Of a stretch of DNA of 64,000 bases, positions 15,401 to 60,572 are shown piece after piece. The notes below the pieces were generated by a model. It saw nothing but the letters and a program-made list of their open reading frames with translations, had not been told where the DNA came from and ran no database searches. Source of the DNA: Monocercomonoides exilis PA203. Lineage: Eukaryota; Protista; Preaxostyla. Position 1 is the first letter of the stretch; each line of letters starts with the position of its first letter. Both the position numbers and the translations under genes were made by a program. Location: assembly GCA_001643675.2 (NCBI GenBank), contig LSRY02000008.1:992001-1056000 (forward strand), in the 5' to 3' direction.

Positions 15401-15542
15401 TCAAAGACTGCAGAGGGAATGAGAAGAAGAGGAAGAAGAGGAAGAAGAAAAAGAAGAAGAAGAAGAAGAAGAAGAAGAAGAAGAAGAAGAAGAAGAAGCC
15501 AAAAGGAATGAAGAAGAAAGGATTTGAAAAAGAGAGCAGAAG

Positions 15543-17106
15543 ATGGAGAATGAAGGAATGAAGAGCGATGAGCTGCCCACAGAAAAGGCGGTCATCGAGT
15601 GCTGTCTGCAAATACTCGCCAACATCAACGAGAACCCGAACAATAACAAGTTCTTCATCGATCCTGTGCTCCTTGGGCTGGTTGTGGAATTGATGAGGTT
15701 TGTCTTATCCTTTTGTTTTGTTTCTCTTTCTCTCTTTATTTGTTCTATTTATTTATTTTATATTTATTTATGAACTTTCATCAACATATTCTATGAATAT
15801 TAATAACAATAATCTGAATGATATTTCAAATGAAATGGTCATCCCCTTCATTCAAAGTGATTCTGTGTCTGTTCTGCGAGTGATGGCATTCCGCTTCTTT
15901 GTGAACTTCTCGTGTGGCAGCGACGAAGACATCCAGCGTCTTCTGCTGCAGCCCTCTTTCTTCGCCGTCTTCGCCTCGCACTTGTCCTCCTCCTCGTCCT
16001 GTCTGCGCCACGAGACCGCGCTCCTCGCCTGCAACATCGGCGCCGGCACCTCCTCCCAGGCATGCACGCTCCTCTGGCCGAGGTGTGTCTTCACCCTCTG
16101 CCACATCGCCCAGGCAGACGCACACAGCGCCCAGTGCCACGCGCTGAGGGCACTGAGGAACGTGGGGCTGCTGGGGAAGGAGGCGGCGGGGGTGATTGTG
16201 GAGGCTGGGTGTGTGGAGGCAGTGGCGCAGATTCTGAAGAGAGGGAGGTATCGGAGTGTGGTGTGCGAGGCAATTGACCTGCTGTGGGTGCTGCTGGGGC
16301 AGTGGGAAAAGAAGGATAATGAAGAAGAGGAAGAAGGTGAAAAAGGAGAAGAAGGTGAAAAAGAAGATGGATATGACAATTATGCAACAAAAAGTGCGTT
16401 CAATGGCAATTGGCAAGTGGCAGAGAAGCCGATGGGAATGTTGGGGGCGAATTGGAAGCAACCAGATCCTACGCTTTTTGAGCTGATTGAAACAACTTCT
16501 TCTTCCATTTTCTCTCAAAACGTGCCAATTTACCAGACGCAGGATGCATTTTGCTCGACTCCTTCGGAGTCTTCGCATGAAACAAGTGAAAATACAAGTC
16601 ATTCTTATTCATCATCATCATCATCATCTGTTGGCTCATTGCGTTATCATTACTCTTCGCCAAGCAACATGAATGCACGAAATTCTTCATTCACTTCTTT
16701 TTCTACTTCTCCTTCATCATCATCATCATCTTCTTCTTCTTATCAACATTCTTCATCACTCATTTCACCCAACTCATGTTTTCCTTCCTCAGAATCCAGT
16801 TCTCTTTCACAAACAACCTCAATTTCATCAACATCCTATCCAATTGCAAGCTCGTCCTCAAACACTTTCTCTTCTTCTTCTTCTCTTCCTTCTCATTCTC
16901 CAGCCACTTTATCTCAGTCGCAGGGTTTCAGCAGCCAATTTGCCAGCAACTCTTCCACAGCCACACAGCTGCCTCCATCTTCCCTTCCAACGCCTCGTGT
17001 TTCTGAGCTCCAGCCGCCTTTCAGCTTCGACTCTTCACTCTATCTGAAGCACAAAACTCCTTCAGGGCTGGCTCCGCTTTCTTCGCCTGTGTTTATCCTT
17101 CCTTAA
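15543..17106 (+). CDS. Importin-alpha-like ARM-repeat protein with Ser-rich tail, 5'-truncated copy
   Basis: Exon 15543-15697 (CLQILANINE), an intron (about 15698-15858), then AFRFFVNFSCGSDEDIQ, ALLACNIGAGTSSQ and ALRALRNVG...IVEAGCVEAV ARM-like repeats. It lacks the upstream sequence seen at 59610-60570. Confidence 0.6.
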
Positions 17107-18730
17107 CAGTTCCTGTGAAACATTCCGCTTGATGTTGGGATGACTGGCAATTTATGTTTCGAGTTTTGGACTGACAGTTAGCTTTATTCTTATTTGTTGA
17201 TTTTTACATGATGGTTTTTTTTCTCCAAACTTTTTGTGAAATAATGCATGCCAAAGATATGAAAAAGGGTTATGAAAAAAGAGCTTCAATGTTGATTTGT
17301 GATCTTTGGTGAATTGTTTGACGAAAAATACAAAAAAAGATTATTTTGTAAGTTAAAAAAGAAAGCTGTTATTAACAAATTCTTACATCCAAAAAAACCA
17401 AGGAAATCACAAATGCAGATAATTAAAAGAGACAAAATACAAGCATTCTTCTTTGCTTTCTTTTATTTTCCAAACAATAATAACTGAATTTGAGACAGAT
17501 TTTTCATTCGAATTGCGATATCCTCCCATTCCGATTAAAAGAATCATGTTTGATACACTTGCCTCGAATACACTCAGCTGAACCTTCTTCAGCGGAAAAG
17601 ATGTTCAGAAGATTGTGCCTGATCAATTTATATTTCTCCTTTCTTCAATGGCATTTCCATTGTGACCATCTCAAACAGTTCATGAGTCTTCTTCAGAGAA
17701 TCATTCACGTCTCTCCTCGAGGTTTTCTTCTCTTCATCTGTTTGCCTTCTTCCACAATTCGAAAGAGACAGTATTCAATCGGAACTCTAATTTTTGTCAT
17801 TCAGATATGTTTGAAGAGAATTTCTCACACTTCAATAAATGAGTTTTCAACAACACCAATGGAGCCTATTTCACAAAAGGATTTCCTTTTTTAATAATCT
17901 TTTTTTTCCACACATATTATTGTGTAATGTGATTTGTTAATGCGATATAAAAATGTGTATTTCTTCGAAGCTTTTTTTCAAATCATTTATGTGACACTGA
18001 CAGATATTTGTAATGTCTTTCTCAAAATCTTCACTTTGTGTGACATCAAATGAACCATCTGAATGTCAAAGTTCATGTTGTCTTTGCGAATATTCTGTGT
18101 TTTTTGCAAGACAGCAACAAAACACTCTCAATTCCCAAAAATGAACAAATATGAGCCAATTATTAACTGAATCGCAACTGTTGAATCTGATCAAAATGGC
18201 TGCAACAAAATCGTCAAAGCACAACAACCAAAAACAACAGTTCTCTCAACTCCAAAATCACAGAAATGCTCATTTCATTTTCAAAATGCCAAAGTGAATT
18301 TTCAGTCACATTGGCAAATTGAAAAAGAAAGAAAAAGAAAGAAAAAGAAAGAAAGAAGAAAATAAGATGATTTAAAGTGAGATTTTCTTTCACTATTTGC
18401 AAAATCAAATAAAAATGAGACTGGTAAATTTTCAGACAATAAAAAAAAAAATTAAAAAAATTAAAGCAATGAAATGAAATGAATCGCTTAAATTTCATAC
18501 AAAATGAAAAAAAAAATATTGAAGATGAATAGAAAGGTTATCAAAATGATTCTTATTTGAAGAATATCCGAGTGTTTGCAGAAGGTTAGAAAGTCACTTC
18601 AAAAGAAAGAAAGAAAGAATAACCATGCATTTCGATAGGCCGTTGAAGAGCCTTTATTGAGAAACCAGTTAATCAGCTGATTCATTGAAAGCATCTTAAA
18701 TGATGAATTCAATGCAAATATGACAAACAC

Positions 18731-21700
18731 TCATGCGGTTTTATCAATCGTCATCCATTCCGGAAGTGCACCCTGGACATCGCTTTTCCAGTAATCTGCC
18801 ATCGTATTTCCTTTCTTATCCTTCAACGAATAACTATGTCTCATCCACACTGGCGGTTCTGTTTTCACAAACTGAATCCATAGCATAGCCATTGTTTTCC
18901 CCTCCTTATCGCTAAGTGAAATGGCGTGTCTCATCCATTCTGGCGGATCTGTCTTCACACCCCAAATCCATATCATTGCCATCGTCCATCCATCCTTATC
19001 ATAAACTGTGATGCTGTGTCTCATCCATTCGGGTGGTTCTGTTTTCACAAGAGCAATCCAATGCATGGCCATCGTCCATCCATCCTTGTTTTGCAGAGTG
19101 ATTTCATGCCTCATCCAACTCGGTGGTTCTGTCTTCACACCCCAAATCCATATCATTGCCATCGTCCACCCATCCTTATCGCTTTGCGTCTTATTATGTC
19201 TCGTCCATTCTGGAGGTTCTGTCTTCACATTCTCAATCCACAGCATTGCCATTGTTCGTCCAAACTTATCGGCAAGCGTATAGTCGTGTCGCATTCGCTC
19301 TGGTGGTTCTGTCTTGTTCTCAATAATCCACCTCATTCCCGGCGTTTGTCCATTTTTGTCTTTCAATGTATCATCAAATTTCATCCATTCCGGTAATTCA
19401 GTTTCAACAAAAAATTCCCAATAATCTGCCATTGTCCATCCGTTATTATTTGTAAGTGCAATGTTGTGTCTCATCCATTCCGGTGGCTCTGTTTGAACAA
19501 ATTGAATCCAAAGCATGGACATTGTCCATCCGTTATTATTTGTAAGTGCAATGTCGTGTCTCATCCATTCTGGCGGTTCTGTTTGAACAAACTGAATCCA
19601 TATCAGAGCCATTGTCCATCCTTCCTTATCAGCAAGTTCATTGTCATGTCTCATCCATTCTGGAGGTTCTGTCTTGACATGATTAATCCATATCATAGCC
19701 ATTGTTGATCCGTCATTATCAGCAAGTGAAATATCGTGTCTCATCCATTCTGGTGGTTCAGTTTCAGTGAACTGAATCCACATCATCGCCATCGTCCATC
19801 CAAAATTATTTCTGATTGTTATGTCATGTCTCATCCATATTGGTGGGTCTTTCTTCACAAATTGAATCCACAACATTGCCATTGTTCGTCCAAACTTATC
19901 GGCAAGCGTGTTGTCGTGTCTCATCCATCCCGGTGGTTCTGTCTTGTTCTCAATAATCCACCTCATTCCCGGCGTTTGTCCATTTTTGTCTTTCAATGTT
20001 TCATCAAATACCATCCATTTCGGTAATTTAGTTTTAACATATATTTTCCAATAATCTGCCATCGTTTTCTCTTTCTTATCCTTCAACGAATTACAATGTC
20101 TCATCCATTCTGGTGGTTCTGTCTTGACATGAAAAATCCACTTCATTGCCATTGTTAATCCGTTCTTATCATAAACTGTGATACTGTGTCTCATCCATTC
20201 TGAAGGTTCTGTTTTGACATTTGAAATCCATATCATAGCCATTGTTGCTCCTTTATTGTTGCGAAGTGTGATGTCATGCCTCATCCACTCCGGTGGATCT
20301 GTTTTGACGTCTTGAATCCAGAACATAGCCATCGTCCATCCATCCTTCTGAGTTAGTGTAATATCGTGTCTCATCCATTCTGGTGGCTCATTCTTAACAA
20401 AGTGAATCCAAAACATAGCCATTGTCCATCCGTCTTTATAAGCAAGTGTAATATCGTGTCTCATCCATTCTGGCGGTTCTTTTTTGACGTTTGTGATCCA
20501 GAACATTGCCATTGTCCATCCATTATTATTTGTAAGTGCAATATCGTGTCTCATCCACTCGGATGGTTCTGTTTTGACGTCTTGAATCCACTTCATTGCC
20601 ATAGTCCATCCGTCTTTATTGGTTAGTGTAATGTCATGTCTCATCCATTTCGGTGGCTCCTTTTCAACAAATTGAATCCATATCATAGCCATTGTCCAGC
20701 CATCTTTATCTGAAAGTGTTGCATCGTGCCTCATCCATTCTGGCGGTTCTTTCTTGACGACTTGAATCCATATCATTGCCATTGTCCAGCCATCCTTTTG
20801 AGAAAGTGTTGCGTCATGTCTCATCCACTCTGGTGGGTCAGTTTGAACAAATTGAATCCAATGCATAGCCATTGTCATTCCGTCCTTATCAGTAAGTGTT
20901 ATATCATGTCTCATCCAATCTGGGGGTTCTGTTTTGACATTTGCAATCCATATCATAGCCATTGTGGATCCGTCCTTATTGCCAACTGTAATGTCATGCC
21001 TCATCCATTCTGGTGGTTCTGTTTTGACGTCTTGAATCCATAGCATGGCCATTGTTAATCCCTCCTTATTTCCAAGTGAAATATCGTGTCTCATCCATTG
21101 TGGAGGTTCTGCCTTGACGCATTCAATCCAGAACATAGCCATTGTGTATCCATCCTTATTGGTAAGTGTGATGTCATGTCTCATCCATTCTGGCGGTTCT
21201 TTCTTGACGACTTGAATCCACTTCATTGCCATAGTCCATCCGTCTTTATTGGTTAGTGTGATATCGTGCCTCATCCATTCTGGCGGCTCTGTTTTGACAT
21301 TATAAATCCATATCATTGCCATTGTTGACTCATAATTATTGCGGAGTGCGATGTCGTGCCTCATCCATTCTGGGGGTTCTGTCTTTACATTTTCAATCCA
21401 TAACATGGCCATTGTCCAACCATCCTTCTGAGTTAGTGTTGCGTCATGTCTCATCCATTGTGGAGGTTCTGCCTTGACGCATTCAATCCAGAACATAGCC
21501 ATTGTGTATCCATCCTTATTGGTAAGTGTGATGTCATGTCTCATCCATTCTGGCGGTTCTTTCTTGACGACTTGAATCCACTTCATTGCCATAGTCCATC
21601 CGTCTTTATTGGTTAGTGTGATATCGTGCCTCATCCATTCTGGCGGCTCTGTTTTGACATTATAAATCCATATCATTGCCATTGTTGCTCCTTTATTGTT

Positions 21701-22651
21701 GCGAAGTGTGATGTCATGCCTCATCCACTCCGGTGGATCTGTTTGAACAAACTGAATCCAGAACATGGCCATTGTCCAACCATCCTTCTGAGTTAGTGTT
21801 GCGTCATGTCTCATCCATTGTGGAGGTTCTGCCTTGACGCATTCAATCCAGAACATAGCCATTGTGTATCCATCCTTATTGGTAAGTGTGATGTCATGTC
21901 TCATCCATTCTGGCGGTTCTTTCTTGACGACTTGAATCCACTTCATTGCCATCGTCCATCCATCCTTCTGAGTTAGTGTAATATCGTGTCTCATCCATTC
22001 TGGTGGCTCATTCTTAACAAAGTGAATCCACAACATAGCCATTGTTGCGCCATTATTGTTGCAAAGTGTGATGTCATGTCTCATCCATTTTGGTGGTTCT
22101 GTTTGAACAAACTGAATCCACTTCATTGCCATAGTCCATCCGTCTTTATTGGTTAGTGTGATATCGTGTCTCATCCATTTCGGTGGATCTGTTTTGACGT
22201 CTTGAATCCACTTCATTGCCATAGTCCATCCGTCTTTATTGGTTAGTGTAATGTCATGTCTCATCCATTTCGGTGGCTCCTTTTCAACAAATTGAATCCA
22301 TATCATAGCCATTGTCCAGCCATCTTTATCTGAAAGTGTTGCATCGTGCCTCATCCATTCTGGCGGTTCTTTCTTGACGACTTGAATCCAAAACATAGCC
22401 ATTGTATTTCCTTTCTCAGTTCTAAGCGTAATATCGTGTCTCATCCATTCTGGTGGTTCTGTTTGAACAAATTGAAGCCACAACATGGCCATTGTCCATC
22501 CGTCATTATCAGCAAGTGAAATATCATGTTTCATTTCCGATGGAGGATCTGTCTTTTTCTCAGCAATCCATCGCATTGCTTCTGTTCTTCCATACTCGTC
22601 CCTTTTCAATGGATCACTTTTCAATTTTTGCATATCTTTTTCGCATTCCAT
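18731..22651 (-). CDS. Intronless Trp/Met-rich 30-aa tandem-repeat protein (about 43 units, ankyrin-like hairpin), copy 1
   Basis: Open frame of about 1306 aa from the ATG at 22651. Consensus HDITLxxKDGxTMAMxWIxxVKTEPPEWMR, with 90-bp DNA periodicity. Confidence 0.9.
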   Translation of the reverse strand: MECEKDMQKLKSDPLKRDEYGRTEAMRWIAEKKTDPPSEMKHDISLADNDGWTMAMLWLQFVQTEPPEWMRHDITLRTEKGNTMAMFWIQVVKKEPPEWMRHDATLSDKDGWTMAMIWIQFVEKEPPKWMRHDITLTNKDGWTMAMKWIQDVKTDPPKWMRHDITLTNKDGWTMAMKWIQFVQTEPPKWMRHDITLCNNNGATMAMLWIHFVKNEPPEWMRHDITLTQKDGWTMAMKWIQVVKKEPPEWMRHDITLTNKDGYTMAMFWIECVKAEPPQWMRHDATLTQKDGWTMAMFWIQFVQTDPPEWMRHDITLRNNKGATMAMIWIYNVKTEPPEWMRHDITLTNKDGWTMAMKWIQVVKKEPPEWMRHDITLTNKDGYTMAMFWIECVKAEPPQWMRHDATLTQKDGWTMAMLWIENVKTEPPEWMRHDIALRNNYESTMAMIWIYNVKTEPPEWMRHDITLTNKDGWTMAMKWIQVVKKEPPEWMRHDITLTNKDGYTMAMFWIECVKAEPPQWMRHDISLGNKEGLTMAMLWIQDVKTEPPEWMRHDITVGNKDGSTMAMIWIANVKTEPPDWMRHDITLTDKDGMTMAMHWIQFVQTDPPEWMRHDATLSQKDGWTMAMIWIQVVKKEPPEWMRHDATLSDKDGWTMAMIWIQFVEKEPPKWMRHDITLTNKDGWTMAMKWIQDVKTEPSEWMRHDIALTNNNGWTMAMFWITNVKKEPPEWMRHDITLAYKDGWTMAMFWIHFVKNEPPEWMRHDITLTQKDGWTMAMFWIQDVKTDPPEWMRHDITLRNNKGATMAMIWISNVKTEPSEWMRHSITVYDKNGLTMAMKWIFHVKTEPPEWMRHCNSLKDKKEKTMADYWKIYVKTKLPKWMVFDETLKDKNGQTPGMRWIIENKTEPPGWMRHDNTLADKFGRTMAMLWIQFVKKDPPIWMRHDITIRNNFGWTMAMMWIQFTETEPPEWMRHDISLADNDGSTMAMIWINHVKTEPPEWMRHDNELADKEGWTMALIWIQFVQTEPPEWMRHDIALTNNNGWTMSMLWIQFVQTEPPEWMRHNIALTNNNGWTMADYWEFFVETELPEWMKFDDTLKDKNGQTPGMRWIIENKTEPPERMRHDYTLADKFGRTMAMLWIENVKTEPPEWTRHNKTQSDKDGWTMAMIWIWGVKTEPPSWMRHEITLQNKDGWTMAMHWIALVKTEPPEWMRHSITVYDKDGWTMAMIWIWGVKTDPPEWMRHAISLSDKEGKTMAMLWIQFVKTEPPVWMRHSYSLKDKKGNTMADYWKSDVQGALPEWMTIDKTA

Positions 22652-24039
22652 TTTATCGCTCAATGCTTAGGTTTAGCTGCTCGTCCTGCAATATAAGCAG
22701 AAAAAATGTCAATCGTTAAAAACTATTATTTGAAATATATATTATATATTTGATCATAAATGAGCATTTTTTTAAATACTGTTTATCATCTTTAAATATA
22801 TTAGAAAATGAGCATAAAGTGATTGCATGATTTTTGGCAGTGTTGCATTTTGTTATTCAAACATTTTTTTCAAAACAATTTTAATTTTTTAATATTAATA
22901 ATTCATATTTTTATTTCTTTTGACGTTCGTTCAACAAATTTTTTGTGAATGAAAATGAAAAGCCAAGTTGTGAAAAATAGCAAACCTGTGAAATTATGTT
23001 GAGTCTTATATTTTCTGCTCTTTTGCTTTTGCACCAAAACTCTCAGAAACATGAAAATGATTAAATTCAGATATTTGTTATAACCAACTCATTTCTTTTT
23101 TATTCACATTTCAAATCGCTTCTGGGATGCATTCATTTGGATCAGCCGCATCAAGAGTTGAGTGAGTGAGTGAGTGTGAGTGTGAGTGTCTAAGGGTGTG
23201 GCAGAAGAGAATGGAAAGATGAATGCCATTCACTCTGATGGAGAACATGCACATTCTGAAGAGAGGCAGAAATGCTGCCTTTGGAATAGAAATGGCTGAA
23301 TGAAAAGACAAAAGCGAAAGGGCAAAAGAGAGAAAAGAGAGAAAAGAGAGAAAAGAGAGAAAAGAGAGAAAAGGGCGAAAAAGGAGAAAAGGGATGTTTG
23401 AATGGAAAATGTGAATGTTCAGAGCAAATGGATAGGAAAAGAATGTGACACTCAACATCATTCAGAATGAGAAGTGAGAGTTGAAAAATTAATTGTGAAA
23501 TTGAGAGGATTATCAAAATGTTGGAAATGAAGAGAAAGAAAAAGAGAAAGAAAAAGAAAAAGAAATAGAAATAGAAATAGAAATAGAAAAAGAAAAAGAG
23601 AAAGAAAAAGAAAATGGGTTTTGATGATGCTCTTTGGACGAGCTGGGCGGCAAAGGCGAACAAGAATCATTTGAAGAAAATGCAGACATTATGAACAGAT
23701 TCGAATTACATAACAGCCAATTGCAACAACAAATGGAAGAATTATTCCGTGTTGCAACATGAGAATTTGATGGTCAATAAGTTCTCAAAAACGAAGAAGA
23801 TGATCTTTTCATCAGCCAAATTAAAAAATCTTGTTAATGAAGAGATCGAAGGAGAGTGAGAAGAAACCCTATTATCTCCAAAAAATGCTGCTTGATATGG
23901 ATTGTCCATGGAAATGGAGCTTAACACAAAAAATGCTGTTGGTTTGAATGGAAAAAAGACATTAAAAGGATTTTAAAATAATTTGTCTTGCATTGATTTA
24001 ATAAATTCCTAAAAAGAACACACCTGTCCTCCATATAGC

Positions 24040-26304: not shown

Positions 26305-27016
26305 GGAAATGCTTCACATTTTTTGACACAAATTTTTTATTTTTATTTTTTTTTTTGCCATTTCACAAAAGAGAAAACAAGAGAGCATTTCAAAAAAAAA
26401 AAAAGAATGTTTTTCAAAGCTTCGAAAAGAAATAAAGCAATTAAAAAAAGATAAAAAAGAAGAATTACAAAATCATATAATGAAAGGTATTATTCAAGGT
26501 TCAACCTCAACTCACCACGCAATTTCATTCAGATTATTCAAGCAATTGAATGAAGAAAATACAGAGTTGATACACAAATTAATATTCTCTTTCGCTTCTT
26601 TCGCTTCTTTTTTCGTATTCGCATTTGGTGTCTTTATTTATAAATCTTGTGTAACAATTACATGTTTTCTTATCATTTCCATTTGGAGAGTCTGTCTATA
26701 ACAGATAAGCGGAGACACATTCTGATGTCAAATACCTCAAAAGGGGGAGGGGGGAGAAGGGGGGTTCTTGATTTCTTTTGTCTAATGTTGAAGAATGAAT
26801 GGAAAAAAACACTCGGAGAATTCGATTCAGTTAAGATATGAAAGCAGGTTGGCAAATTATCTCACTGGGAAGAAGGAGACGCAGAAATAAAAGAAGATGA
26901 TGAAGGTGAAGAGGAGGAGGAAGTTCTGTTTTGCGGGAAATTTGGTACCTCAATTGCATATGGAAGCACGAAATGTGGTATAACTGCTGAAGTTGCTGTT
27001 GTTTGAGGAGAAAGAG

Positions 27017-27345
27017 GAGGAAGAGGAAGAAGAATCATCAATTCTTGTTGTGTTTATTTGATGATTGGGAGATGAACTTTCCAAATTAGCATACATATTG
27101 TGGGGGCTGTGTGTTTGTGAAGTGGAATGCTTGGAAAGCACACGTTGTGGAATAGATTCAGAACGAGGAAGAGGAGGATAATAAGAATTAGAATTGGAGG
27201 AAGGAAATAAAGTGGAAGAAGATGAAGAGAAAGAAAAAGAAGGTGGAGAAGGAAAAGATGATGAAAAGTCGAATGAAAAAAATATTCTTGAATAACATTC
27301 AATTGTCAATCATTCATTGAATTCACAATCTTCTTCTTCTTCTTC
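27017..27345 (+). repeat. ~325-bp direct repeat, copy 1 (partner 47828-48153)
   Basis: Near-identical sequence. The minus-strand ORFs MTIECYSRIFF... at 26950-27309 and 47740-48120 match. Confidence 0.9.
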
Positions 27346-27716
27346 ACTTCAACCTCCTCGCAACCTTTCTCAAACGTCTGGCCTTGTGTTAGCGTCTTCT
27401 TTCTTCTCTGCCATGAAGCAGTGTCGTGTGTCATTGGAGAATGAAGCGATGTGGGAGCTCTTCTTGTTCTATGCAGTGGAGGAAGGCGATAAAGATGGAT
27501 GGGTTGGAGGAGGAGGAGGAAGAAGAGAAGAAAGAGGAAAAGGAGAAAACGGAGAAAGAGGAGGAAGAGGAGGAAGAGGAGGAAGAGGAGGAAGAGGAGG
27601 AAGAGGAGGAAGAGGAGGAAGAGGAGGAAGAATTGTGAAAGGGAAGACGAGGAAGACGAGGAAGACGAGGAAGAAGAGGAAGAAGAAGAGGAAGAGGAAG
27701 AGGAAGAAGAAGAGGA

Positions 27717-29369: not shown

Positions 29370-30236
29370 GGTAATTTTTTTATCCGGACATTTTTTTTAA
29401 TCCGGACATTTTTTTCATTGGTGTTTCTCAATAAATAAAAACTAAAAACAGAAAAATCATATTGGACCAGGTTTGAATACGTATTTCATGTTTATAAAAT
29501 TTTTTTTTCATTTCAATTTTTGTTATTGATGATCTTGAGAATTTTTAATTTATTTTTGATCATTTGTTTTGTCCATTTTGGACTATCTTTCTTTTTTTAT
29601 TTATTTTTAACTATTTTTTCGATTGTTTTTCGCATTTCATCGTTTTTATCAAAAAATTTGAAAAACTGAAAATTCTTTGCGATACAATGTTTAATGGATA
29701 TTAAAAATGATGTGCATGAAAAGAAAACAACTCACATAAAGTATTTGCCTAGTTAAAATTTAGTGAAATGTTGTTGCAGAAGTTGCATAAATCAAATTTA
29801 GATTATTTCATTTTTGCTCATTTCATTTTTGATTCAATCAAATATGACTAAAAATTAAAACAACGATGTGTTTTCATCTTATTATCAAATTGATATAAAA
29901 TTATAATCTATATATCATACAAAAATTCAGATAACTTTAGTTTTTCAAATTTTTTGATAAAAACGATGAAATGCGAAAAACAATCGAAAAAATAGTTAAA
30001 AATAAATAAAAAAAGAAAGATAGTCCAAAATGGACAAAACAAATGATCAAAAATAAATTAAAAATTCTCAAGATCATCAATAACAAAAATTGAAATGAAA
30101 AAAAAATTTTATAAACATGAAATACGTATTCAAACCTGGTCCAATATGATTTTTCTGTTTTTAGTTTTTATTTATTGAGAAACACCAATGAAAAAAATGT
30201 CCGGATTAAAAAAAATGTCCGGATAAAAAAATCACC
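29370..30236. mobile_element. Foldback/Mutator-like non-autonomous element with ~300-bp inverted arms
   Basis: 29370-29667 is essentially the exact reverse complement of 29940-30236, around a ~270-bp AT-rich spacer. Subterminal TCCGGACA doublets; no ORF. Confidence 0.85.
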
Positions 30237-45099: not shown

Positions 45100-47152
45100 G
45101 ATATCAACTAATTTGGATCCTGTTTTTCTTTGTAAAGCGAAATAAATATCCATAAATAACATGAATCAAATTTTAATGGGAACGGAATGATCTGCATTTT
45201 TTGATAATTTGTGATTTTTTGTAGGACAAAATTAAAGTCATGGAACTTTTCAAAAAAATATAGACATATTGAATTTTAAAATGTATTTTGAAATGAAGCC
45301 TATTTTTCATGGGGGAGGGGGGGGGGGTTGAAAACCTTCCTTCAAGCTTCCACGAGAAATTGGTTGGTTTCAAGGGGTGCAAAGCCACTTTGTTCATTCT
45401 AAATATATTTTTTGTAAATATTTTTATGAAATTCAATTATTTTTAAAAAAATATGAAAATTCGATCAAAACCTTAAAAGAAAAAATGAAAATACTTGTTG
45501 AAGAAAAAAGAAAAGCAGGGCAGAAAAAATTAAAGCATACGATGTTATCTTTTCAACACAGAAAATACATGAATAAATTAGAACGAATGGCACATATTGT
45601 GTATGATGGCGTCGTCAGGATCACAGACGCCAACAAATCTAAGCAAATCAGCCGCAGCAGCATTAAAAACGCAGTTCGGGCGTTGCGAACAAAAAGTGAA
45701 GTTGGAAAACCAGGGAGACTGCAGGCAATCAGCAAAGAGAAGGAAGAAACAGTTCTGGATGTGATCAAAATTGATTCTGTTTGTGGGAGCAGTTTAACAA
45801 TGAAGAAAACAAGTGAATTGGTTTGTGCAAGTTTTTTATTGAAACAATTCCATTTTTTCTTTTGAAGGAAAATGTTTTAAATGATGCGAAAAACGAAAAC
45901 GAGACTAATTAAAAAGTTTCGAATTCAGCAGTATTTGAATTTCAATAGCGACATCCCGATTTGAAAAAAAGCAAAACGAAAAGTTTAGACATAAATCGGC
46001 TGGCTGTGTCATGCAAAAGTGTGATGAAGCCCTGGCATCAAATGGTAACAGAATCACATGAAAAAAATCATTACACACCTTCATTAATATTTAACGTTGA
46101 TGAATCATCTTTGCGTATCCCTTCTTCTGCCAGAATTAGTGTAATTCATCCATCCAACCAAAGCGCTGGGTACAGTAAGGAAGCGCAAAGAATGGACAAT
46201 GCAACATTTGCTGCTGCCGTGGCTGTTGATGGTTATTCATTGCCTTGCATCATTCTCTGGCCAAGTGTTAAACAACCGGACGAACTGAAGCCTCTGCTCT
46301 CTCCAACTCTGGACATCTGGCCTAACAAAAGTGGCTGGATGGACAAGCAAAACTTCAAGAAATATACAGAAACAGTTCTCCTCCCTTCCATCGTTGAAAG
46401 AAGAAAGCACATGTCATTTGAAACAGAGAAATGCCTTCTTTTCATCGACTCTCATTTTTCTCGCGGGGATCCTTCAATTTGGAAAGCCTTTTCAGAAAAT
46501 TACATAGATGTCGTAACACTCATCCTCCACAGCACTCATTTGTCTCAGCCCCTCGAAAGAGGAGTATTTGCCACTCTCAAAACTTCTCTTTCTTCATCAT
46601 TTGATGTTCCATCATCTACTTCATCGTCTGCTTCAAGAAAAGCACTTGTCGACGTGCTTCCTCAAGAAATTCACTCCGCTTTCACTCCTTCTGTAATTAA
46701 AAAAGCTGTTAAACAAAGCGGAGTCCTTCATTATACGTTCGGTCCGGTTCTTCGCAAACTACCGGAATCATCAAAATACTCTCTTCCTTCCCATCGGAAC
46801 CGTTTCGATTATTTTGGAATGTTAATTACAAAAAAAGAACTTCTCGAAGATTGGGAAAGATTTTTAGGGAGAAATGAAGAAAAGGAGAATAAAAAAGACA
46901 TGAAACAGGTGATAGAAAACGAAAAAGATGAAATGATTGAATTCAAACATAAAATCAAAAGAAAACGCTCTGACGTTATTTTTGATGAACCAAACGAAGA
47001 GGAAAACGAAGAGATGCAAAGAAAACCAGGAAAAAGAAAGATAATTCGAAGAATTGATTCTTCTTTTTTATTTAATAAAATTTTTCTAAAATTTTCACTT
47101 CAAAAATATGTGTCAAAATAAAAAAAATGGGTTGGGGTTAAATGATAACCTT
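45100..47152 (+). mobile_element. pogo/Tigger-like DNA transposon, near full length, degenerate
   Basis: Transposase at about 45485-47121, with an intron near 45821-45867 and a frameshift near 45900-45960. Motifs IFNVDESSL, FIDSHFS and HSTHLSQPLERG. The 3' end GGGGTTAAATGATAACCT|TA lies at about 47151. The upstream GAAGCCTATTT/G-tract is shared with the 1-1422 copy. Confidence 0.8.
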
Positions 47153-47827
47153 ATATTGATCGACCTAACAAAAATTCATATCATTATTTTCGAAAATTGA
47201 TGTTGAGATTCTTTCTTGTTAATGAAGAGAATTTTATTCTGATTTCTAAATGAAATAAATTGAAAATATACGAATGGAGCTTGGGAGAAGACAAAAAGTG
47301 AAATAGACATGCAAAAGAAAAGAATGGGGAATATATATCAGTTTGCTGCAAAGAAGAAAGAAACTGAAAACGAAAATAAGTTATAGTTGAATGTCAAACA
47401 TATTTTGAGAATAATTGTCTTTTTGAAATCATCTATCAATGGATCATTGGGTTATGAATGATGAAAAGAAATGAATTTCTGAAAAAAAACAAATTGACTG
47501 AACAAAAGAAAAGAAAAGAACTTGAATAAAGAGAAGATGCTTGCAGAATGGAAGAGGATCAAGACCCAATGCTTCAATTGCAAAATAATCTTGCGCCATG
47601 AAGAAAAATAATGAAGGCCATCACCAACAAATATGATGGAGATTCTTCTGTTTATCGAGAGTGAAACATCAAAAGGAAATATATTTATTCGTTTGGATGT
47701 TATAAAAAGATTTGCATATGCAAAGAAACTTGTATTCTTTCACCCAAACGAGATTTGGAGAAGAAGGAGAAGAAGAGGAAGAGGAAGAAGAGGAAGAGGA
47801 AGAGGAAGAGGAGAAGAAGATGAGGAA

Positions 47828-48153
47828 GAGGAAGAGGAAAAAGAATCATCAATTTTTGTTGTGTTTATTTGATGATTGGGAGATGAACTTTCCAAATTAG
47901 CATACATATTGTGGGGGCTGTGTGTTTGTGAAGTGGAATGCTTGGAAAGCACACGTTGTGGAATAGATTCAGAACGAGGAAGAGGAGGAAAATGAGAATA
48001 TGAATTGGAGGAAGGAAACAAAGTGGAAGAAGAAGAAGAGAAAGAAAAAGAAGGTGGAGAAGGAAAAGATGATGAAAAGTCGAATGAAAAAAATATTCTT
48101 GAATAACATTCAATTGTCAATCATTCATTGAATTCACAATCTTCTTCTTCTTC
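47828..48153 (+). repeat. ~325-bp direct repeat, copy 2
   Basis: Matches 27017-27345. Confidence 0.9.
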
Positions 48154-48991
48154 TCTCAAAAAAACCTCCAAATCCGAAAAACAAGAACAAAAAAAGATTT
48201 TATTTCTCCCTTGCCATTTTCCAATTGCAAAAAGAATCTTGTCTTTCTTTCGAGAATGCACAAGTTTTCATCTCGTTTCATAAATCCGAATGTTTCAAAA
48301 TCATCACATTCATCTTCTTCTTCCTCTTCTTCCTCTTTTTCCTCATCTCCTACCCTTCCTCTTCCGCCTCCTATTTCTTTTTCTTCTTCTTCTTCTCTTT
48401 CTCCATCTTCACTTTCTTCCTCTTCTTCTTCTTCTTTTTCATTTACCCTTCTCTTTCCTGCTTTCTCCAACATTTCGTCCTTCATCCAGTCATCCTCCCG
48501 CCTTGCCACTGGCCTTTTGTCGATTTCAATATTTTCCGCTCAGAAACTTGAAGCAACAATTAAATTGGCGAAGATGCAGAATGAAGAAGTGAGCATGTAT
48601 TTTAAGTATTGCTCCCTTCTCTCTAATACCGGTTTCACTCATTTCTGCAGTGCATAAACACCCATCCGAAGCAACAAATCCCTCTTTTCACTCAACTTCA
48701 ACAAATCCTCTCTCTCTCTCTCTCTTTCTTTTCCTTTTCTCCTCTTCTTAAATGTTTGAAAATTCTGATTGAAATAGAATGTGGAGATTTGACAGATCCA
48801 ATTTTGATTATTATTCATTATTTGATTTCATTGTTGTTCTTTTCCTTTTTATTTTAGTTTTGTTGCAAATGTTAGATATGAAAAAAAGACTTTTTCAAAA
48901 AGCAACTCAATTAATTATTGAAGAATGAAATGATAAAAATAAAAGAATATATATAATTTTTGAGTTACAGAATAAATAACGTCTCTTTAAC

Positions 48992-52989: not shown

Positions 52990-55900
52990 TTCTGCCACAC
53001 ACACACTCACACTCACTCACTCACTCACTCACTCACTCACTCACTCAACTCTTGATGCGGCTGATCCAAATGAATGCATCCCAGAAGCGATTTGAAATGT
53101 GAATGAAAAAATAAAAAAGAAATGAGTTGGTTATAACAAATATCTGAATTTAATCATTTTCATGTTTCTGAGAGTTTTGGTGCAAAAGCAAAAGAGCAGA
53201 AAATATAAGACTCAACATAATTTCACAGGTTTGCTATTTTTCACAACTTGGCTTTTCATTTTCATTCACAAAAAATTTGTTGAACGAACGTCAAAAGAAA
53301 TAAAAATATGAATAATTAACATTAAATTTTTTTTTGTTTTGAAAAAAATGTTTGAATAACAAAATGCAACACTGCCAAAAATCATGCAATCACTTTATGC
53401 TCATTTTTTCATTTATTTAAAGATGATAAACAGTATTTCAAAATTTTATTCTTTGATGATCAAATATATAATATATATTTCAAATAATAGTTTTTAACGA
53501 TTGACATTTTTTCTGCTTATATTGCAGGACGAGCAGCTAAACCTAAGCACTGAGCGATAAAATGGAATGCGAAAAAGATATGCAAAAATTGAAAAGTGAT
53601 CCATTGAAAAGGGACGAGGATGGAAGAACAGAAGCAATGCGATGGATTGCTGAGAAAATGACAGAACCTCCATCGGGAATACGACATGATATTTCACTTG
53701 CTGATAATGACGGATGGACAATGGCCATGTTGTGGCTTCAATTTGTTCAAACAGAACCACCAGAATGGATGAGACACGATATCACACTTTCAAATGATAA
53801 TGGATGGACAATGGCCATGAATTGGATTCAGTTTGTTCAAACAGAACCGCCAGAATGGATGAGGCACGATATCACACTTAGAACCAAGAAAGAAAATACG
53901 ATGGCCATGTTCTGGGTTCAGTTTGTTCAAACAGAGCCGCCAGAATGGATGAGACACGATATCACACTAACCAATAAAGACGGATGGACAATAGCTATGA
54001 TATGGATTCAAGTCGTCAAGGCAGAACCTCCACAATGGATGAGACATGACGCAACACTAACTCAAAAGGATGGCTGGACTATGGCCATGTTATGGATTGA
54101 AAATGTAAAGACAGAACCCCCAGAATGGATGAGGCACGACATCGCACTCCGCAATAATTATGAGTCAACAATGGCAATGATATGGATTTATAATGTCAAA
54201 ACAGAGCCGCCAGAATGGATGAGGCACGATATCACACTAACCAATAAAGACGGATGGACTATGGCAATGAAGTGGATTCAAGTCGTCAAGAAAGAACCGC
54301 CAGAATGGATGAGACATGACATCACACTTACCAATAAGGATGGATACACAATGGCTATGTTCTGGATTGAATGCGTCAAGGCAGAACCTCCACAATGGAT
54401 GAGACATGACGCAACACTAACTCAGAAGGATGGTTGGACAATGGCCATGTTCTGGATTCAGTTTGTTCAAACAGATCCACCGGAGTGGATGAGGCATGAC
54501 ATCACACTTCGCAACAATAAAGGAGCAACAATGGCAATGATATGGATTTCAAATGTCAAAACAGAACCTCCAGAATGGATGAGACACAGTATCACAGTTT
54601 ATGATAAGAACGGATTAACAATGGCCATGCTTTGGATTCAAGACGTCAAAACAGAACCTCCAGAATGGATGAGGCATGACATCATTCTACGTAACAAAGA
54701 CGGCCCAACGATGGCGATGATGTGGATTCAAGTCGTCAAGAAAGAACCGCCAGAATGGATGAGACATGATATTGCACTTTCCGACGAGGATGGATACACA
54801 ATGTCGATGTTTTGGATTCAGTTTGTTCAAACAGAACCCTCAGAATGGATGAGACATGGCATTACACTTCGCGATAGCGGTGGAGAGACTATGGCCATGT
54901 TGTGGATTCACTTTGTCAAGATGGAGCCGCCAGAATGGATGAGGCACGATATCACACTTAGAACCAAGAAAGAAAATACGATGGCCATGTTCTGGATTCA
55001 GTTTGTTCAAACAGAGCCGCCAGAATGGATGAGACACGATATTACGCTTAGAACTGAGAAAGGAAATACAATGGCTATGTTTTGGATTCAAGAAGTCAAA
55101 ACAGAACCGCCAGAATGGATGAGACACGATATTACGCTTAGAACTGAGAAAGGAAATACAATGGCTATGTTTTGGATTCAAGAAGTCAAAACAGAACCGC
55201 CAGAATGGATGAGGCACGATATCACACTAACCAATAAAGACGGATGGACTATGGCAATGAAGTGGATTCAAGTCGTCAAGAAAGAACCGCCAGAATGGAT
55301 GAGACATGACATCACACTTACCAATAAGGATGGATACACAATGGCCATGTTCTGGATTCAAGACGTCAAAACAGATCCACCGGAGTGGATGAGGCATGAC
55401 ATCACACTTCGCAACAATAAAGGAGCAACAATGGCTATGATATGGATTTCAAATGTCAAAACAGAACCTTCAGAATGGATGAGACACAGTATCACAGTTT
55501 ATGATAAGAACGGATTAACAATGGCCATGCTTTGGATTCAAGACGTCAAAACAGAACCTCCAGAATGGATGAGGCATGACATCATTCTACGTAACAAAGA
55601 CGGCCTAACGATGGCGATGATGTGGATTCAGTTCACTGAAACTGAACCCCCAGAATGGATGAGACATTGTAATTCATTGAAAGATAAGAGAAGATGTACA
55701 ATGGCAGATTATTGGGAATTTTTTGTTGAAACTGAATTACCGGAATGGATGAAATTTGATGATACATTGAAAGACAAAAATGGACAAACGCCGGGAATGA
55801 GGTGGATTATTGAGAACAAGACAGAACCACCAGAGCGAATGCGACACGACTATACGCTTGCCGATAAGTTTGGACGAACAATGGCAATGCTGTGGATTGA

Positions 55901-58900
55901 GAATGTGAAGACAGAACCTCCAGAATGGACGAGACATAATAAGACGCAAAGCGATAAGGATGGGTGGACGATGGCAATGATATGGATTTGGGGTGTGAAG
56001 ACAGAACCACCGAGTTGGATGAGGCATGAAATCACTCTGCAAAACAAGGATGGATGGACGATGGCCATGCATTGGATTGCTCTTGTGAAAACAGAACCAC
56101 CCGAATGGATGAGACACAGCATCACAGTTTATGATAAGGATGGATGGACGATGGCAATGATATGGATTTGGGGTGTGAAGACAGATCCGCCAGAATGGAT
56201 GAGACACGCCATTTCACTTAGCGATAAGGAGGGGAAAACAATGGCTATGCTGTGGATTCAGTTTGTGAAAACAGAACCGCCAGTGTGGATAAGACATAGT
56301 TATTCGTTGAAGGATAAGAAAGGAAATACGATGGCAGATTACTGGAAAAGCGATGTCCAGGGTGCACTACCGGAATGGATGACGATTGATAAAACCGCAT
56401 GAGTGTTTGTCATATTTGCATTGAATTCATCATTTAAGATGCTTTCAATGAATCAGCTGATTAACTGGTTTCTCAATAAAGGCTCTTCAACGGCCTATCG
56501 AAATGCATGGTTATTCTTTCTTTCTTTCTTTTGAAGTGACTTTCTAACTTTCTGCAAACACTCGGATATTCTTCAAATAAGAATCATTTTGATAACCTTT
56601 CTATTCATCTTCAATAATTTTTTTTTCATTTTGTATGAAATTTAAGCGATTCATTTCATTTCAACACTTTTATTTTTTTAATTTTTTTTTTTTTTTTGTC
56701 TGAAAATTTACCAGTCTCATTTTTATTTGATTTTGCAAATAATGAAAGAAAATCTCAATTCAAATCACTTGTTTTCTTTTTATTTTTCTTTTTATTTTTT
56801 CTTTTTTTCAATTTACCAATGCGACTGAAAATTCACTTGGGCATTTTGAAAATGAAATGAGCATTTCTGTGATTTGGAGTTGAGAGAACTGTTGTTTTTG
56901 GTTGTTGTGCTTTGACGATTTTGTTGCAGCCATTTTGATCGGATTCAACAGTTGCAATTCAGTTAATAATTGGCTCATATTTGTTCATTTTTGGGAATTG
57001 AAAGTGTTTCGTTGCTGTCTTGAAAAAAACACAGAATATTCACAAAGGCAACACCTGTTTTGACATTCAGATGTTTCATTTGAAATCACACGAAGTGACG
57101 ATTTTGAGAAAGACATTACAAATATCTGTTTGTGTCACATTAATGATTTATTAAAAAAAAGCTTCGAAGAAATATTCATTTTTATATCTCATTAACAAAT
57201 CACGTTACACAACAAAATGTGTGAAAAAAATAAAATTGATTATTAAAAAAGGAAATCATTTTGTGAAATAGACTCCATTGGCGTTGTTGAAAACTCATTT
57301 ATTGAAGTGTGAGAAATTCTCTTCAAACACATCTGAATGACAAAAATCGGAGTTCCGATTGAATACTGTCTCTTTCGAATTGTGGAAGAAGGCAAACAGA
57401 TGAAGAGAAGAAAACCTCGAGGAGAGAGCGTGAATAATTCCATGAAGAAGACTCATGAACTGTTTGAGAAGGTCATTATGGAAATACCATTTAAGAAAGG
57501 AGAAAAATAAATGGATCGTACACAATCTTCTGAACATCTTTTCTGCTGAAGAAGGTTCAGCTAAATGCATTCAAGGCAAGAGGTTCAGACATGATTCTTT
57601 CAATCTGAATGGGAAGATATAAAAATTTGAATGAAAAATCTGTCTCAAATTCAGTTATTATTGTTTGGAAAAGATAAGAAAGCAAAGAAGAACGCTTGTA
57701 TTTTGTCTCTTTTAATTGCGAAGAAGCATGAATGAGAGCGTCAAATGTCTTCAGTTCAATCGAGAAAGAAACAGGATCAAAAACACATCAATGTCTTTGT
57801 GCATTTGTTTTTATACTAATATTTTTCATTTGCACAACTCCAAAAAATCATAAATCAACATTGAAGTTCTTTTTTCATAACCCTTTTTCATATCTTTGGC
57901 ATGCATTATTAAACAAAAAGTTTGAAGGAAATAAACGTTATAAAAAAATCAACAAATAAGAACAAAGCCAATAACCAGTCCAAAACTTTAAATAGAAATC
58001 ACAAAAGATGCCAACATCAAACAGAATGTTTCACAAGAACTGTTAAGGACGGATAAACACAGGCGAAGAAAGCGGAGCAAGCCCTGAAGGAGTTTTGTGC
58101 TTCAGATAGAGTGAAGAGTCGAAGCTGAAAGGCGGCTGGAGCTCAGAAACACGAGGCGTTGGAAGGGAAGATGGAGGCAGCTGTGTGGCTGTGGAAGAGT
58201 TGCTGGCAAATTGGCTGCTGAAGCCCTGCGATTGAGCTGAAGTGGCTGGAGAATGAGAAGGAAGAGAAGAAGAAAAAAAGAAAGTGTTTGAGGACGAGCT
58301 TTCAATTGGATAGGATGTAGATGAAATTGATGTTGTTTGTGAAAGAGAACTGGATTTTGAGGAAGGAAAACGTGAGTTGGGTGAAATGAGTGATGGAGAA
58401 TGAGAAGAAGAAGAAGAAGAAGATGATGATAATGATGAAGGAGAAGTGAATGAAGAATTTCGTGCATTCATGTTGCTTGGCGAAGAGTAATGATAACGCA
58501 ATGAGCCAACAGATGATGATGATGATGATGAATAAGAATGACTTGTATTTTCACTTGTCTCATGCGAAGACTCCGAAGGAGTCGAGCGAAATGCATCCAG
58601 CGTCTGGTAAATTGGCACGTTTTGAGAGAAAATGGAAGAAGAAGTTGTTTCAATCAGCTCAAAAAGCGTAGGATCTGGTTGCTTCCAATTCGCCCCCAAC
58701 ATTCCCATCGGCTTCTCTGCCACTTGCCAATTACCATTGAACGCACTTTTTGTTGCATAACTGTCATATCCATCTTCTTTTTCACCTTCTTCTCCTTTTC
58801 CTCCTTCTTCCTCTTCTTCATTATCCTTCTTTTCACACTGCCCCAGCAGCACCCACAGCAGGTCCATTGCCTCGCACACCACACTCCGATACCTCCCTCT

Positions 58901-59610
58901 CTTCAGAATCTGCGCCACTGCCTCCACACACCCAGCCTCCACAATCACCCCCGCAGCCTCCTTCCCCAGCAGCCCCACGTTCCTCAGTGCCCTCAGCGCG
59001 TGGCACTGGGCGCTGTGTGCGTCTGCCTGGGCGATGTGGCAGAGGGCGAAGACACACCTCGGCCGAAGGAGGGTGCATGCCTGGGAGGAGGTGCCGGCGC
59101 CAATGTTGCAGGCGAGGAGCGCGGCCTCGTGGTGTAGACAGGACGAGGAGGAGGACAAGTGCGAGGCGAAGACGGCGAAGAAAGAGGGCTGCAGCAGAAG
59201 ACGCTGGATGTCTTCGTCGCTGCCACACGAGAAGTTCACAAAGAAGCGGAATGCCATCACTCGCAGAACAGACACAGAATCACTTTGAATGAAGGGGATG
59301 ATCATTTCATTCGAAATATCATTCAGATTATTGTTATTCATATTCATAGGATATGTCGATGAAAGTTCAAAAATAAATATAAAATAAATAAATAGAACAA
59401 ATAAAGAGAGAAAGAGAAACAAAACAAAAGGATAAGACAAACCTCATCAATTCCACAACCAGCCCAAGGAGCACAGGATCGATGAAGAACTTGTTATTGT
59501 TCGGGTTCTCGTTGATGTTGGCGAGTATTTGCAGACAGCACTCGATGACCGCCTTTTCTGTGGGCAGCTCATCGTTCTTCATTCCTTCATTCTCCATCTT
59601 CTGCTCTCTT
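52990..59610. repeat. Right arm of the inverted segmental duplication
   Basis: Reverse complement of about 15531-23205. It is shorter mainly because the repeat gene has 12 fewer 90-bp units. Confidence 0.95.
53562..56402 (+). CDS. Intronless Trp/Met-rich 30-aa tandem-repeat protein (about 31 units), copy 2
   Basis: 946-aa ORF with the same N-cap (MECEKDMQKLKSDPLKRDE) and C-terminus (GALPEWMTIDKTA) as copy 1, but a different internal repeat order. Confidence 0.9.
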   Translation: MECEKDMQKLKSDPLKRDEDGRTEAMRWIAEKMTEPPSGIRHDISLADNDGWTMAMLWLQFVQTEPPEWMRHDITLSNDNGWTMAMNWIQFVQTEPPEWMRHDITLRTKKENTMAMFWVQFVQTEPPEWMRHDITLTNKDGWTIAMIWIQVVKAEPPQWMRHDATLTQKDGWTMAMLWIENVKTEPPEWMRHDIALRNNYESTMAMIWIYNVKTEPPEWMRHDITLTNKDGWTMAMKWIQVVKKEPPEWMRHDITLTNKDGYTMAMFWIECVKAEPPQWMRHDATLTQKDGWTMAMFWIQFVQTDPPEWMRHDITLRNNKGATMAMIWISNVKTEPPEWMRHSITVYDKNGLTMAMLWIQDVKTEPPEWMRHDIILRNKDGPTMAMMWIQVVKKEPPEWMRHDIALSDEDGYTMSMFWIQFVQTEPSEWMRHGITLRDSGGETMAMLWIHFVKMEPPEWMRHDITLRTKKENTMAMFWIQFVQTEPPEWMRHDITLRTEKGNTMAMFWIQEVKTEPPEWMRHDITLRTEKGNTMAMFWIQEVKTEPPEWMRHDITLTNKDGWTMAMKWIQVVKKEPPEWMRHDITLTNKDGYTMAMFWIQDVKTDPPEWMRHDITLRNNKGATMAMIWISNVKTEPSEWMRHSITVYDKNGLTMAMLWIQDVKTEPPEWMRHDIILRNKDGLTMAMMWIQFTETEPPEWMRHCNSLKDKRRCTMADYWEFFVETELPEWMKFDDTLKDKNGQTPGMRWIIENKTEPPERMRHDYTLADKFGRTMAMLWIENVKTEPPEWTRHNKTQSDKDGWTMAMIWIWGVKTEPPSWMRHEITLQNKDGWTMAMHWIALVKTEPPEWMRHSITVYDKDGWTMAMIWIWGVKTDPPEWMRHAISLSDKEGKTMAMLWIQFVKTEPPVWIRHSYSLKDKKGNTMADYWKSDVQGALPEWMTIDKTA

Positions 59611-60572
59611 CTTCTTCTTCTTCTTTCTCTTTCTCTTCTCTTCTCTTCTTTCGTTCTTCTTCTTCCTCTTCTTCCTCTTCCTCATCATCTTCTTCCTCTC
59701 CTCCTTCTTCCTCTTCTATATTCATCCTCCCTTTCATCTCATCCTCTCTTCTTTCTCCTGCTTTTCCTGTTTTTTCTTCATTCTGCCCAAAATTCATTCC
59801 ATTTTCATTTTCATGTTCATTTTCGCTTTCATTTTCAAACACATTTTCGTCTATCGGCCCAAAAAGTGGACTTTCTCCTCTTTTTGTGTTGTTTTCTTTG
59901 CTTTCTTTGCTTTCTTTGCTTTCTTCACCAACTTCTTCCATTCCATTTTCTTTTCCTTCTTTTCCTTCTTTTCCTTCTTTTCCTTCTTTTCCTTCTTCTT
60001 CTCTTTTTCCTTCATGCTTTCTCAAATTGCCATCTTCAGCTTCATTTTCTTCTTCTGTTCGAACACCAAACAGCCCTCCTTCCACATTAATTCCTCTTCT
60101 TTCTTCTTCCAATTTCTTCTTCCCTTTCTTCTTCTCTCCTTCCTCCTCCTCTTTCTCTTTTTCTCCTTCTCTTCCTTCTCTTCCCTCTCTTCCTCCCTCT
60201 TTCCCTCTTCTCCTCAGCATCCCCTTTGCCGCTCTCCTCATCCGCATTTCCCTCAGCACTTCCTTCACAAACATGGCGGCGTCGAAGAAGAGCTGGTCAG
60301 ACTGAGAGGAAAGCGTCAGCGCTGCCAGAAGCTGAAGGAGATGGGAGGTGGTGGCAGTGACTGGGAATGGCGAGGAGAAGGGCTGGGTGGAGAGATGGGT
60401 GGTGGAGAAGGAGGAAGAGGAGGAAGAGGAGGAAGAGGAGGAAGAGGAGGAAGAGGAGGAAGAGGAGGAAGAGGAGGAAGAGGAGGAAGAGGAGGAAGAG
60501 GAAGAAGAGGGAGAAGAGGGAGAAGAGGGAGAAGAAGATATTATAACAAGCATTCGCAATAGGTTGAACTTT
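58043..60572 (-). CDS. Importin-alpha-like ARM-repeat protein, longer copy (possible frameshift)
   Basis: Same ARM and Ser-rich exon as 15543-17106, plus an upstream poly-Ser/acidic segment (59579-60559) in a different frame across a GAA-rich tract. An acceptor near 60573 implies further upstream exons. Confidence 0.55.
60411..60537. repeat. (GAGGAAGAG)n 9-bp minisatellite encoding poly-Ser on the minus strand
   Basis: Tandem 9-bp units. The same unit occurs at about 27558-27630 and, as the complement, at about 8876-8955. Confidence 0.85.

Follow-up and report, generated by a model that had tools for sequence, protein, structure and literature searches.

The 64,000-nucleotide (nt) stretch of the Monocercomonoides exilis PA203 genome analysed here (contig LSRY02000008.1, positions 992,001 to 1,056,000; C80:992001-1056000, hereafter the window) contains two repeat-protein genes in opposite orientation, copy 1 and copy 2, which belong to a large family in this gut-dwelling oxymonad, an organism reported to lack mitochondria. 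The repeat arrays of the two genes very probably are patchworks, put together by unequal crossover and interlocus gene conversion after the loci had arisen by duplication. This reading, made from the sequence, is based on long blocks of exact identity that keep the register of the repeat unit, lie at shifted and partly non-colinear positions in the two arrays and are embedded in duplicated flanks of 86–96% identity. Related sequences were sought in the complete assembly (82,301,135 bases, 101 contigs). Positions without a contig label are those of the window; A and B designate the units of copy 1 and copy 2, respectively, and decimals indicate fractions of a unit (Table 1).

Exact Blocks Shared by the Two Arrays

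Both arrays are composed of units of exactly 90 nt (30 codons), with no insertion or deletion in any of them (0 indels in 74/74 units) and an open frame that is unbroken from end to end. Each unit bears two strongly conserved stretches, a T-M-A-M core and the motif EPPEWMRHD. The ATG common to both copies is located at 22651 in copy 1, within an open reading frame (ORF) that spans 18731-22663 (-). A preliminary description of this stretch had stated that the termini are shared and that the middles differ by exactly 12 units (1080 bp) with the frame preserved, and this is correct: copy 1 has 43 indel-free units in a gene of 3921 nt and copy 2 has 31 in a gene of 2841 nt. The 5′ ~210 nt of the two copies are near-identical, and the 3′ 705 nt differ at three positions, with identity continuing past the stop codon.

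All exact matches of at least 30 nt between the copies are in register (55/55), and those of at least 80 nt to copy 1 cover 51% of copy 2. Blocks identical to copy 1 had also been reported to occur in altered order, near 21110-21470 and 21660-21840 of copy 1; these positions were approximately right, and the 326-nt block (A14.4-A18.0) indeed precedes the 289-nt block (A8.4-A11.6), the two overlapping within 54081..54549 in the order opposite to that of copy 1. Blocks of 149 and 179 nt meet in unit B20 with one mismatch at the joint, which makes B20 a chimeric unit and skips nine units of copy 1. When copy 2 is painted by the longest stretches that match copy 1 exactly, the path runs through copy 1 units 0.6-3.1, a private stretch, 13.6-18.0, 10.0-11.6, 27.4-28.4, a private stretch, 2.8-3.6 (twice), 15.8-17.4, 26.4-28.4, a private stretch and 36.3 to the end, with two backward jumps. 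Units B10, B11, and B19 are unplaceable in a colinear unit-level alignment of the two copies. Separate clustering of the 5′ and 3′ parts of the units shows that in B12 and B22 a 5′ part like that of A28 is followed by a 3′ part like that of A18, that B20 joins a 5′ part of the A9/13/17 type to the 3′ part of A26, and that the 3′ part of B24 is that of A36.

The duplications described within copy 2 were found as well: 54460-54720 recurs 900 nt downstream with 9/261 mismatches, six of them within the first 9 nt, and 55021-55200 is an exact tandem pair. Internal duplicates lie at offsets of 10 to 12 units in copy 2 and at offsets of 4 and 18 units in copy 1. A unit-level identity matrix, which the preliminary description had recommended, was built for the 88 units of the two copies and a third paralogue (see below); pairwise identity is bimodal, with a median of 63/90, yet 35 pairs at 88/90 or above.

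Relative Age of the Blocks and the Third Paralogue

Copies 1 and 2 are paralogues born of an inverted segmental duplication of ~7 kb and lie ~30 kb apart. Outside the arrays the two arms are 86% identical in intergenic DNA, 96% in a co-duplicated ORF of 465 residues (ORF465) and 94% upstream. Since the blocks are 100% identical and the flanks of the duplication are not, the blocks are younger than the duplication. At 90–94% identity, exact runs in 2841 nt would be expected to reach ~60–90 nt at most, and the probability of a 554-nt exact run is below 1e-15 (for the long blocks overall, P<1e-9 to 1e-15). On this sequence comparison, the copying of the exact blocks, from one locus to the other or within an array, took place after the duplication. 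The shared 3′ tract, which starts with the 554-nt block, is likely a single conversion tract; selection at the protein level cannot explain it because the identity runs ~200 nt into non-coding DNA. The in-register recombination that had been proposed earlier is thus supported by shifted exact multi-unit blocks, by chimeric units and by zero divergence inside flanks that are 86–96% identical.

A third paralogue is located outside the window, ~30 kb from copy 1. Its C-terminal module matches those of copies 1 and 2, and it has a 290-nt exact block in common with copy 1, which is therefore itself a three-way mosaic. The remainder of the third paralogue is 77–97% identical to the matching units of copies 1 and 2.

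Table 1. Position of the two repeat genes, their shared blocks and associated features.
Feature	Position	Strand	Remarks
Copy 2 gene	53562..56402	+	946 amino acids (aa): 12-residue head, 31 units of 30 residues, 4-residue tail
Copy 1 gene	22651..18731	-	1306 aa: same head and tail as copy 2, 43 units
Exact block, 326 nt	54081-54406 = copy 1 21412-21087	+	Units A14.4-A18.0
Exact block, 289 nt	54261-54549 = copy 1 21952-21664	+	Units A8.4-A11.6
Exact block, 149 nt	55197-55345	+	Units A15.8-A17.4
Exact block, 179 nt	55347-55525	+	Units A26.4-A28.4
Exact block, 554 nt	55698-56251 = copy 1 19435-18882	+	Longest block
Shared 3′ tract	55698..56600	+	554-nt exact block, then near-identity across the stop and ~200 nt further
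Exact 90-nt tandem pair	55021-55110 = 55111-55200	+	A03-type units
Largest stretch private to copy 2	54626..55019	+	Units B12.4-B16.8
Third paralogue	C80:980677-981969 (loci L003, L013)	-	430 aa, 14 units, intact; ~11 kb before the start of the window
Exact block, 290 nt	copy 1 19866..20155 (-) = C80:981182-981471		Units A28.3-A31.6; third paralogue
Duplication arm 2	53018..59717	+	~540 nt upstream, copy 2 gene, ~3.3 kb downstream
Duplication arm 1	15425..23188	-	Holds copy 1
Co-duplicated ORF, 465 aa	58043..59440	-	Tail-to-tail with copy 2; multi-copy
Partner of ORF465 in arm 1	15700-17106	+	96% nt identity

Units Private to Copy 2

The private units that had been pointed out in copy 2 are real relative to copy 1, and two of their loop motifs, RDSGGE and RTEKGN, recur in distant members of the family. 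In the whole assembly the best match to the largest private stretch (54626-55019) is at most 77% identical over most of the query, with no near-identical donor, and that to 53783-54013 is at most 86% identical over most of the query; the exception in this donor search is a match of 142 nt at 94% (C80:732771-732912). Most simply, the private units are old units that have been lost from copy 1. In comparisons of B15 and B17 with distant paralogues (L008:1738-1827 and L035:6233-6322) the RDSGGE- and RTEKGN-type loops agree in every nucleotide of their codons, and the scaffold codons differ at 7–10 synonymous positions. Sub-unit conversion, or selection acting on the type of loop, may account for the identical loop codons, although the pairs had been picked as best matches.

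A Possible Route to the Patchworks

Equal units of 90 nt with two conserved cores would make homologous pairing easy even when the arrays are misaligned, provided that the register is kept. Unequal exchange within an array would generate duplications, deletions and chimeric units, while non-reciprocal gene conversion among the inverted copies and the third paralogue would paste exact tracts without rearranging the chromosome. The difference of 12 units would then be the net outcome of several events rather than of a single indel, and repeated remodeling could leave zero-divergence blocks at shifted, partly non-colinear positions together with units private to one copy.

A Shortened Ankyrin-type Repeat

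The period is exactly 30 residues in all units of the three genes (88/88), not the 33 of ankyrin repeats, and the unit does not contain two full helices. An AlphaFold2 model of eight units, obtained with a family alignment of 23 sequences (predicted local distance difference test, pLDDT, 96.1), gives each unit a 9-residue helix and a second helix of one turn (3 residues). The matches listed by Foldseek in the PDB were all ankyrin domains or designed ankyrin repeat proteins (DARPins), with E-values of 6.5e-9 to 2e-6 and template modeling (TM) scores of 0.32–0.67, mostly 0.5–0.67. Comparison by hhalign of the family alignment (A1) with a canonical ankyrin protein (P0118), which came from the exhaustive profile search described below, yielded a probability of 96.3% (E 1.9e-9), with the G-x-T register conserved and a 3-residue gap in helix 2. 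As modeled, the unit is a shortened, Met/Trp-rich ankyrin-type repeat and the array a soluble solenoid. It resembles canonical ankyrin proteins and DARPins in its solenoid fold, its alignable G-x-T helix register and the location of its variable residues on the loop tip and first helix, but differs from them in its period, in a second helix shortened by 3 residues to one turn and in a scaffold rich in Met, Trp, and Pro that the Pfam ankyrin models miss.

In Pfam, neither protein matched any ankyrin family at E ≤ 1, nor at the gathering score; matches to YycE-like_C, PTEN2_C2 and others were rejected as spurious sums with no significant stretch. A word-based search, restricted to 0.55–1.75 of the query length, had pointed to an absence of relatives and was overturned by an exhaustive profile search, which retrieved 256 of them, all metagenomic. 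One (P0006) passes Pfam Ank_2, and several with the EPPEWMRH-type scaffold carry a C-terminal RING finger (P0001, P0003, P0009), a hint that the array can provide a ubiquitin ligase with its substrate-binding arm. In a scan of hydropathy alone, neither a signal peptide nor a membrane segment was found in either protein (the highest 19-residue value is 0.9), and the N-terminus is hydrophilic (mean hydropathy -1.3).

Columns 5, 8, 10, 15, 18, and 19 of the unit are variable and fall on the loop tip and the face of the first helix. In the hhalign register columns 5, 8, 10, 18, and 19 correspond to ankyrin positions 33, 3, 5, 13, and 14, which are reportedly the positions that Binz and colleagues randomized in 2003 in designed ankyrin binders. 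Most likely the protein serves as a scaffold or adaptor that binds other proteins, with the variable residues on the usual binding face of ankyrin repeats. Among 62 non-redundant units no column has a ratio of nonsynonymous to synonymous differences (pN/pS) clearly above 1; in column 5 it peaks at 0.97 and in column 15 at 0.85. The test is weak, as the ratio is a crude pairwise count that ignores recombination and some pS values exceed 1 because there are few synonymous sites per column. Synonymous differences among unit types are near saturation (~0.7).

The Repeat Family in the Genome

Among the matches listed, the family accounts for no fewer than 259 stretches, which fall at some 60 or more loci, many of them on contig C80, and no description of it was found in the literature on Monocercomonoides and ankyrin. 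Recent internal duplicates occur in about half of a sample of 11 other arrays of the family, the rest being free of near-identical internal units. A second inverted pair, C80:91493-93991 (+) and 100352-102850 (-) (L033, L034), encodes two proteins of 832 aa with the same length and unit order; only 10/2499 nt differ and there is no reshuffling. This pair is a younger duplication, and remodeling is not uniform across the family.

Other members have features of their own. A 10-kb segment that includes a family member is 99.7% identical between two contigs of 566 and 28 kb (C53:4001-14000 and C94:4001-14000; L035, L036), probably as a result of assembly redundancy or a second haplotype. At C80:446142-452280 (-, L037) there is a run of six family ORFs in which neighbors overlap by 4 nt and the frame shifts at a degenerate unit that recurs and ends in ...NLLSG or ...NHLIG; the cause is either amplification of a frameshifted unit together with its higher-order repeat or a systematic homopolymer error. 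Long open frames run antisense to the arrays, in the window (53494-53760, 54840-55217, and 55737-56207, all on the minus strand) and in another family member (C53:8699-9913), where they reach 404 aa; most likely they simply result from the codon composition of the repeat.

The co-duplicated ORF of 465–468 aa has an armadillo-looking N-terminal part, a Ser-rich tail and no Pfam match. It has 71 matching stretches genome-wide, several of which lie 2–8 kb from other repeat genes (C53:11.9k, C30:800.8k, C10:1600.8k, and C80:717.7k). This suggests that the repeat gene and ORF465 are a two-gene cassette whose members duplicate jointly. The 30-kb spacer between copies 1 and 2 includes an ORF for a DDE_1 (pogo-type) transposase (45961-47121, +), a pair of 305-nt inverted repeats (29370-29674 and 29933-30236; 99% identity, ~260 nt apart) that resemble a miniature inverted-repeat transposable element, and a 334-nt direct repeat (27014-27346 and 47825-48158; 97% identity).

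Strength of the Evidence and Other Explanations

Several points weigh against extensive post-duplication exchange as the source of the arrays. All the evidence comes from one Oxford Nanopore Technologies (ONT) assembly of one strain, and according to its authors multi-copy regions were polished less well and unevenly (PMC8767320), so that some of the base-level identity between the copies could be consensus blending. Look-ups of the exact proteins, in a collection from which entries of this genome may be missing, gave no independent record of either gene. About 10 of the 31 units of copy 2 are without a close donor in the assembly, and part of the difference between the genes may be old differential loss. 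The concentration of block ends around the T-M-A-M core (21/34, nominal p = 3e-7) is a biased count, since ends need variable sites and are not independent, several blocks having common ends; it was consequently rejected as proof of an exchange hotspot.

Among the alternatives, it is improbable that the arrays are in reality identical, or different in some other way, and that their mosaic structure was created by misjoined or blended long reads and by short-read polishing across paralogues. The history of the assembly gives some room for such an artifact, given that it was produced from ONT reads with Canu, including read correction, followed by Nanopolish and ten rounds of Pilon (PMC8767320), and that redundant contigs such as C53 and C94 exist. 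However, the reads (N50 8.9 kb; 12.9 Gbp for 82 Mb, ~150x; PMC8767320) exceed arrays of 3.9 and 2.8 kb, the perfect 90-nt period and the open frame are kept over 74 units, and the loci are separated by 30 kb and have diverged unique flanks. Furthermore, ~0.9 kb of copy 2 consists of units that occur in no other place in the assembly, which blending cannot create. The lengths of the arrays and the order of their units can probably be trusted, because the read N50 is longer than both arrays, the frames are intact and copy 2 has unique units.

The preliminary description had compared the arrays with those of diversifying receptors or effectors, an analogy that is not supported. It is quite improbable that the local arrays are a selected or programmed cassette-exchange system that produces new binding specificities above the ordinary rate of recombination. 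The large size of the family and its concentration on C80, the exchange of blocks among three neighboring copies, the recurrence of some loop types across distant paralogues and the match between five variable columns and the positions reportedly randomized in designed binders all speak for such a system. On the other hand, the hydropathy scan revealed neither a signal peptide nor a membrane segment, pN/pS nowhere exceeds 0.97, and the three local copies are intact genes rather than silent donor cassettes, with no asymmetry of expression site. The younger inverted pair is unshuffled and about half of the other arrays are without recent duplicates; no dedicated enzyme was seen beside the arrays, and the co-duplicated ORF has no recognizable domain.

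Finally, it is highly improbable that the difference is old and static, with ancient differential loss of units and identical blocks held by selection, even though ~10 copy 2 units lack a close relative and the unit types are old, as protein selection cannot fix synonymous sites over 554 nt while ORF465 is 96% and intergenic DNA 86% identical, the identical 3′ tract extends into non-coding DNA, and the exact blocks occupy shifted, non-colinear unit positions.

Comparison with Known Systems and Significance

Concerted evolution of intragenic tandem repeats through gene conversion and unequal crossover is known from the repeats of yeast FLO adhesins, those of the transcription activator-like (TAL) effectors of Xanthomonas and the variable-number ankyrin genes of Wolbachia. 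The M. exilis arrays have in common with them fixed-length coding units, in-register exchange, frame-preserving changes in copy number, chimeric units and zero-divergence patches between paralogues; they differ in that the product is an intracellular ankyrin-type solenoid of a gut protist and that two inverted copies 30 kb apart and a third copy are involved. The programmed assembly of repeat cassettes in lamprey variable lymphocyte receptors (VLR), trypanosome variant surface glycoproteins (VSG) and Plasmodium var genes likewise joins modular units or cassettes in new orders. In those systems, however, the donor arrays are silent, the products reach the surface, and a dedicated enzyme or expression site takes part; nothing of the kind was seen for the M. 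exilis arrays. The exchange is ordinary evolution of coding tandem repeats and is no evidence for a dedicated diversity-generating system.

The process is a known one, with no new mechanism, acting on an unusual ankyrin variant, and the gene pair provides a quantified case of turnover in a large lineage-specific repeat-protein family of a little-studied protist. The contrast between flanks of 86–96% and tracts of 100% identity serves as an internal clock, which shows that at least three loci went on exchanging sequence once the duplication had taken place. For annotators and assemblers the arrays are a warning, as blending of paralogues in them is a genuine biological process as well as a technical hazard. 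A bolder and unlikely proposition is that the C80 cluster of shortened ankyrin genes is a natural combinatorial binder library, in which old loop-defined unit types would be kept by selection and re-dealt by frequent in-register exchange, so that a culture would contain many array variants with different targets, for example as ubiquitin-ligase adaptors, a role hinted at by the metagenomic relatives fused to a RING finger. Should long reads uncover different versions of an array in a single culture, the family would become a candidate for a natural system of binder diversification.

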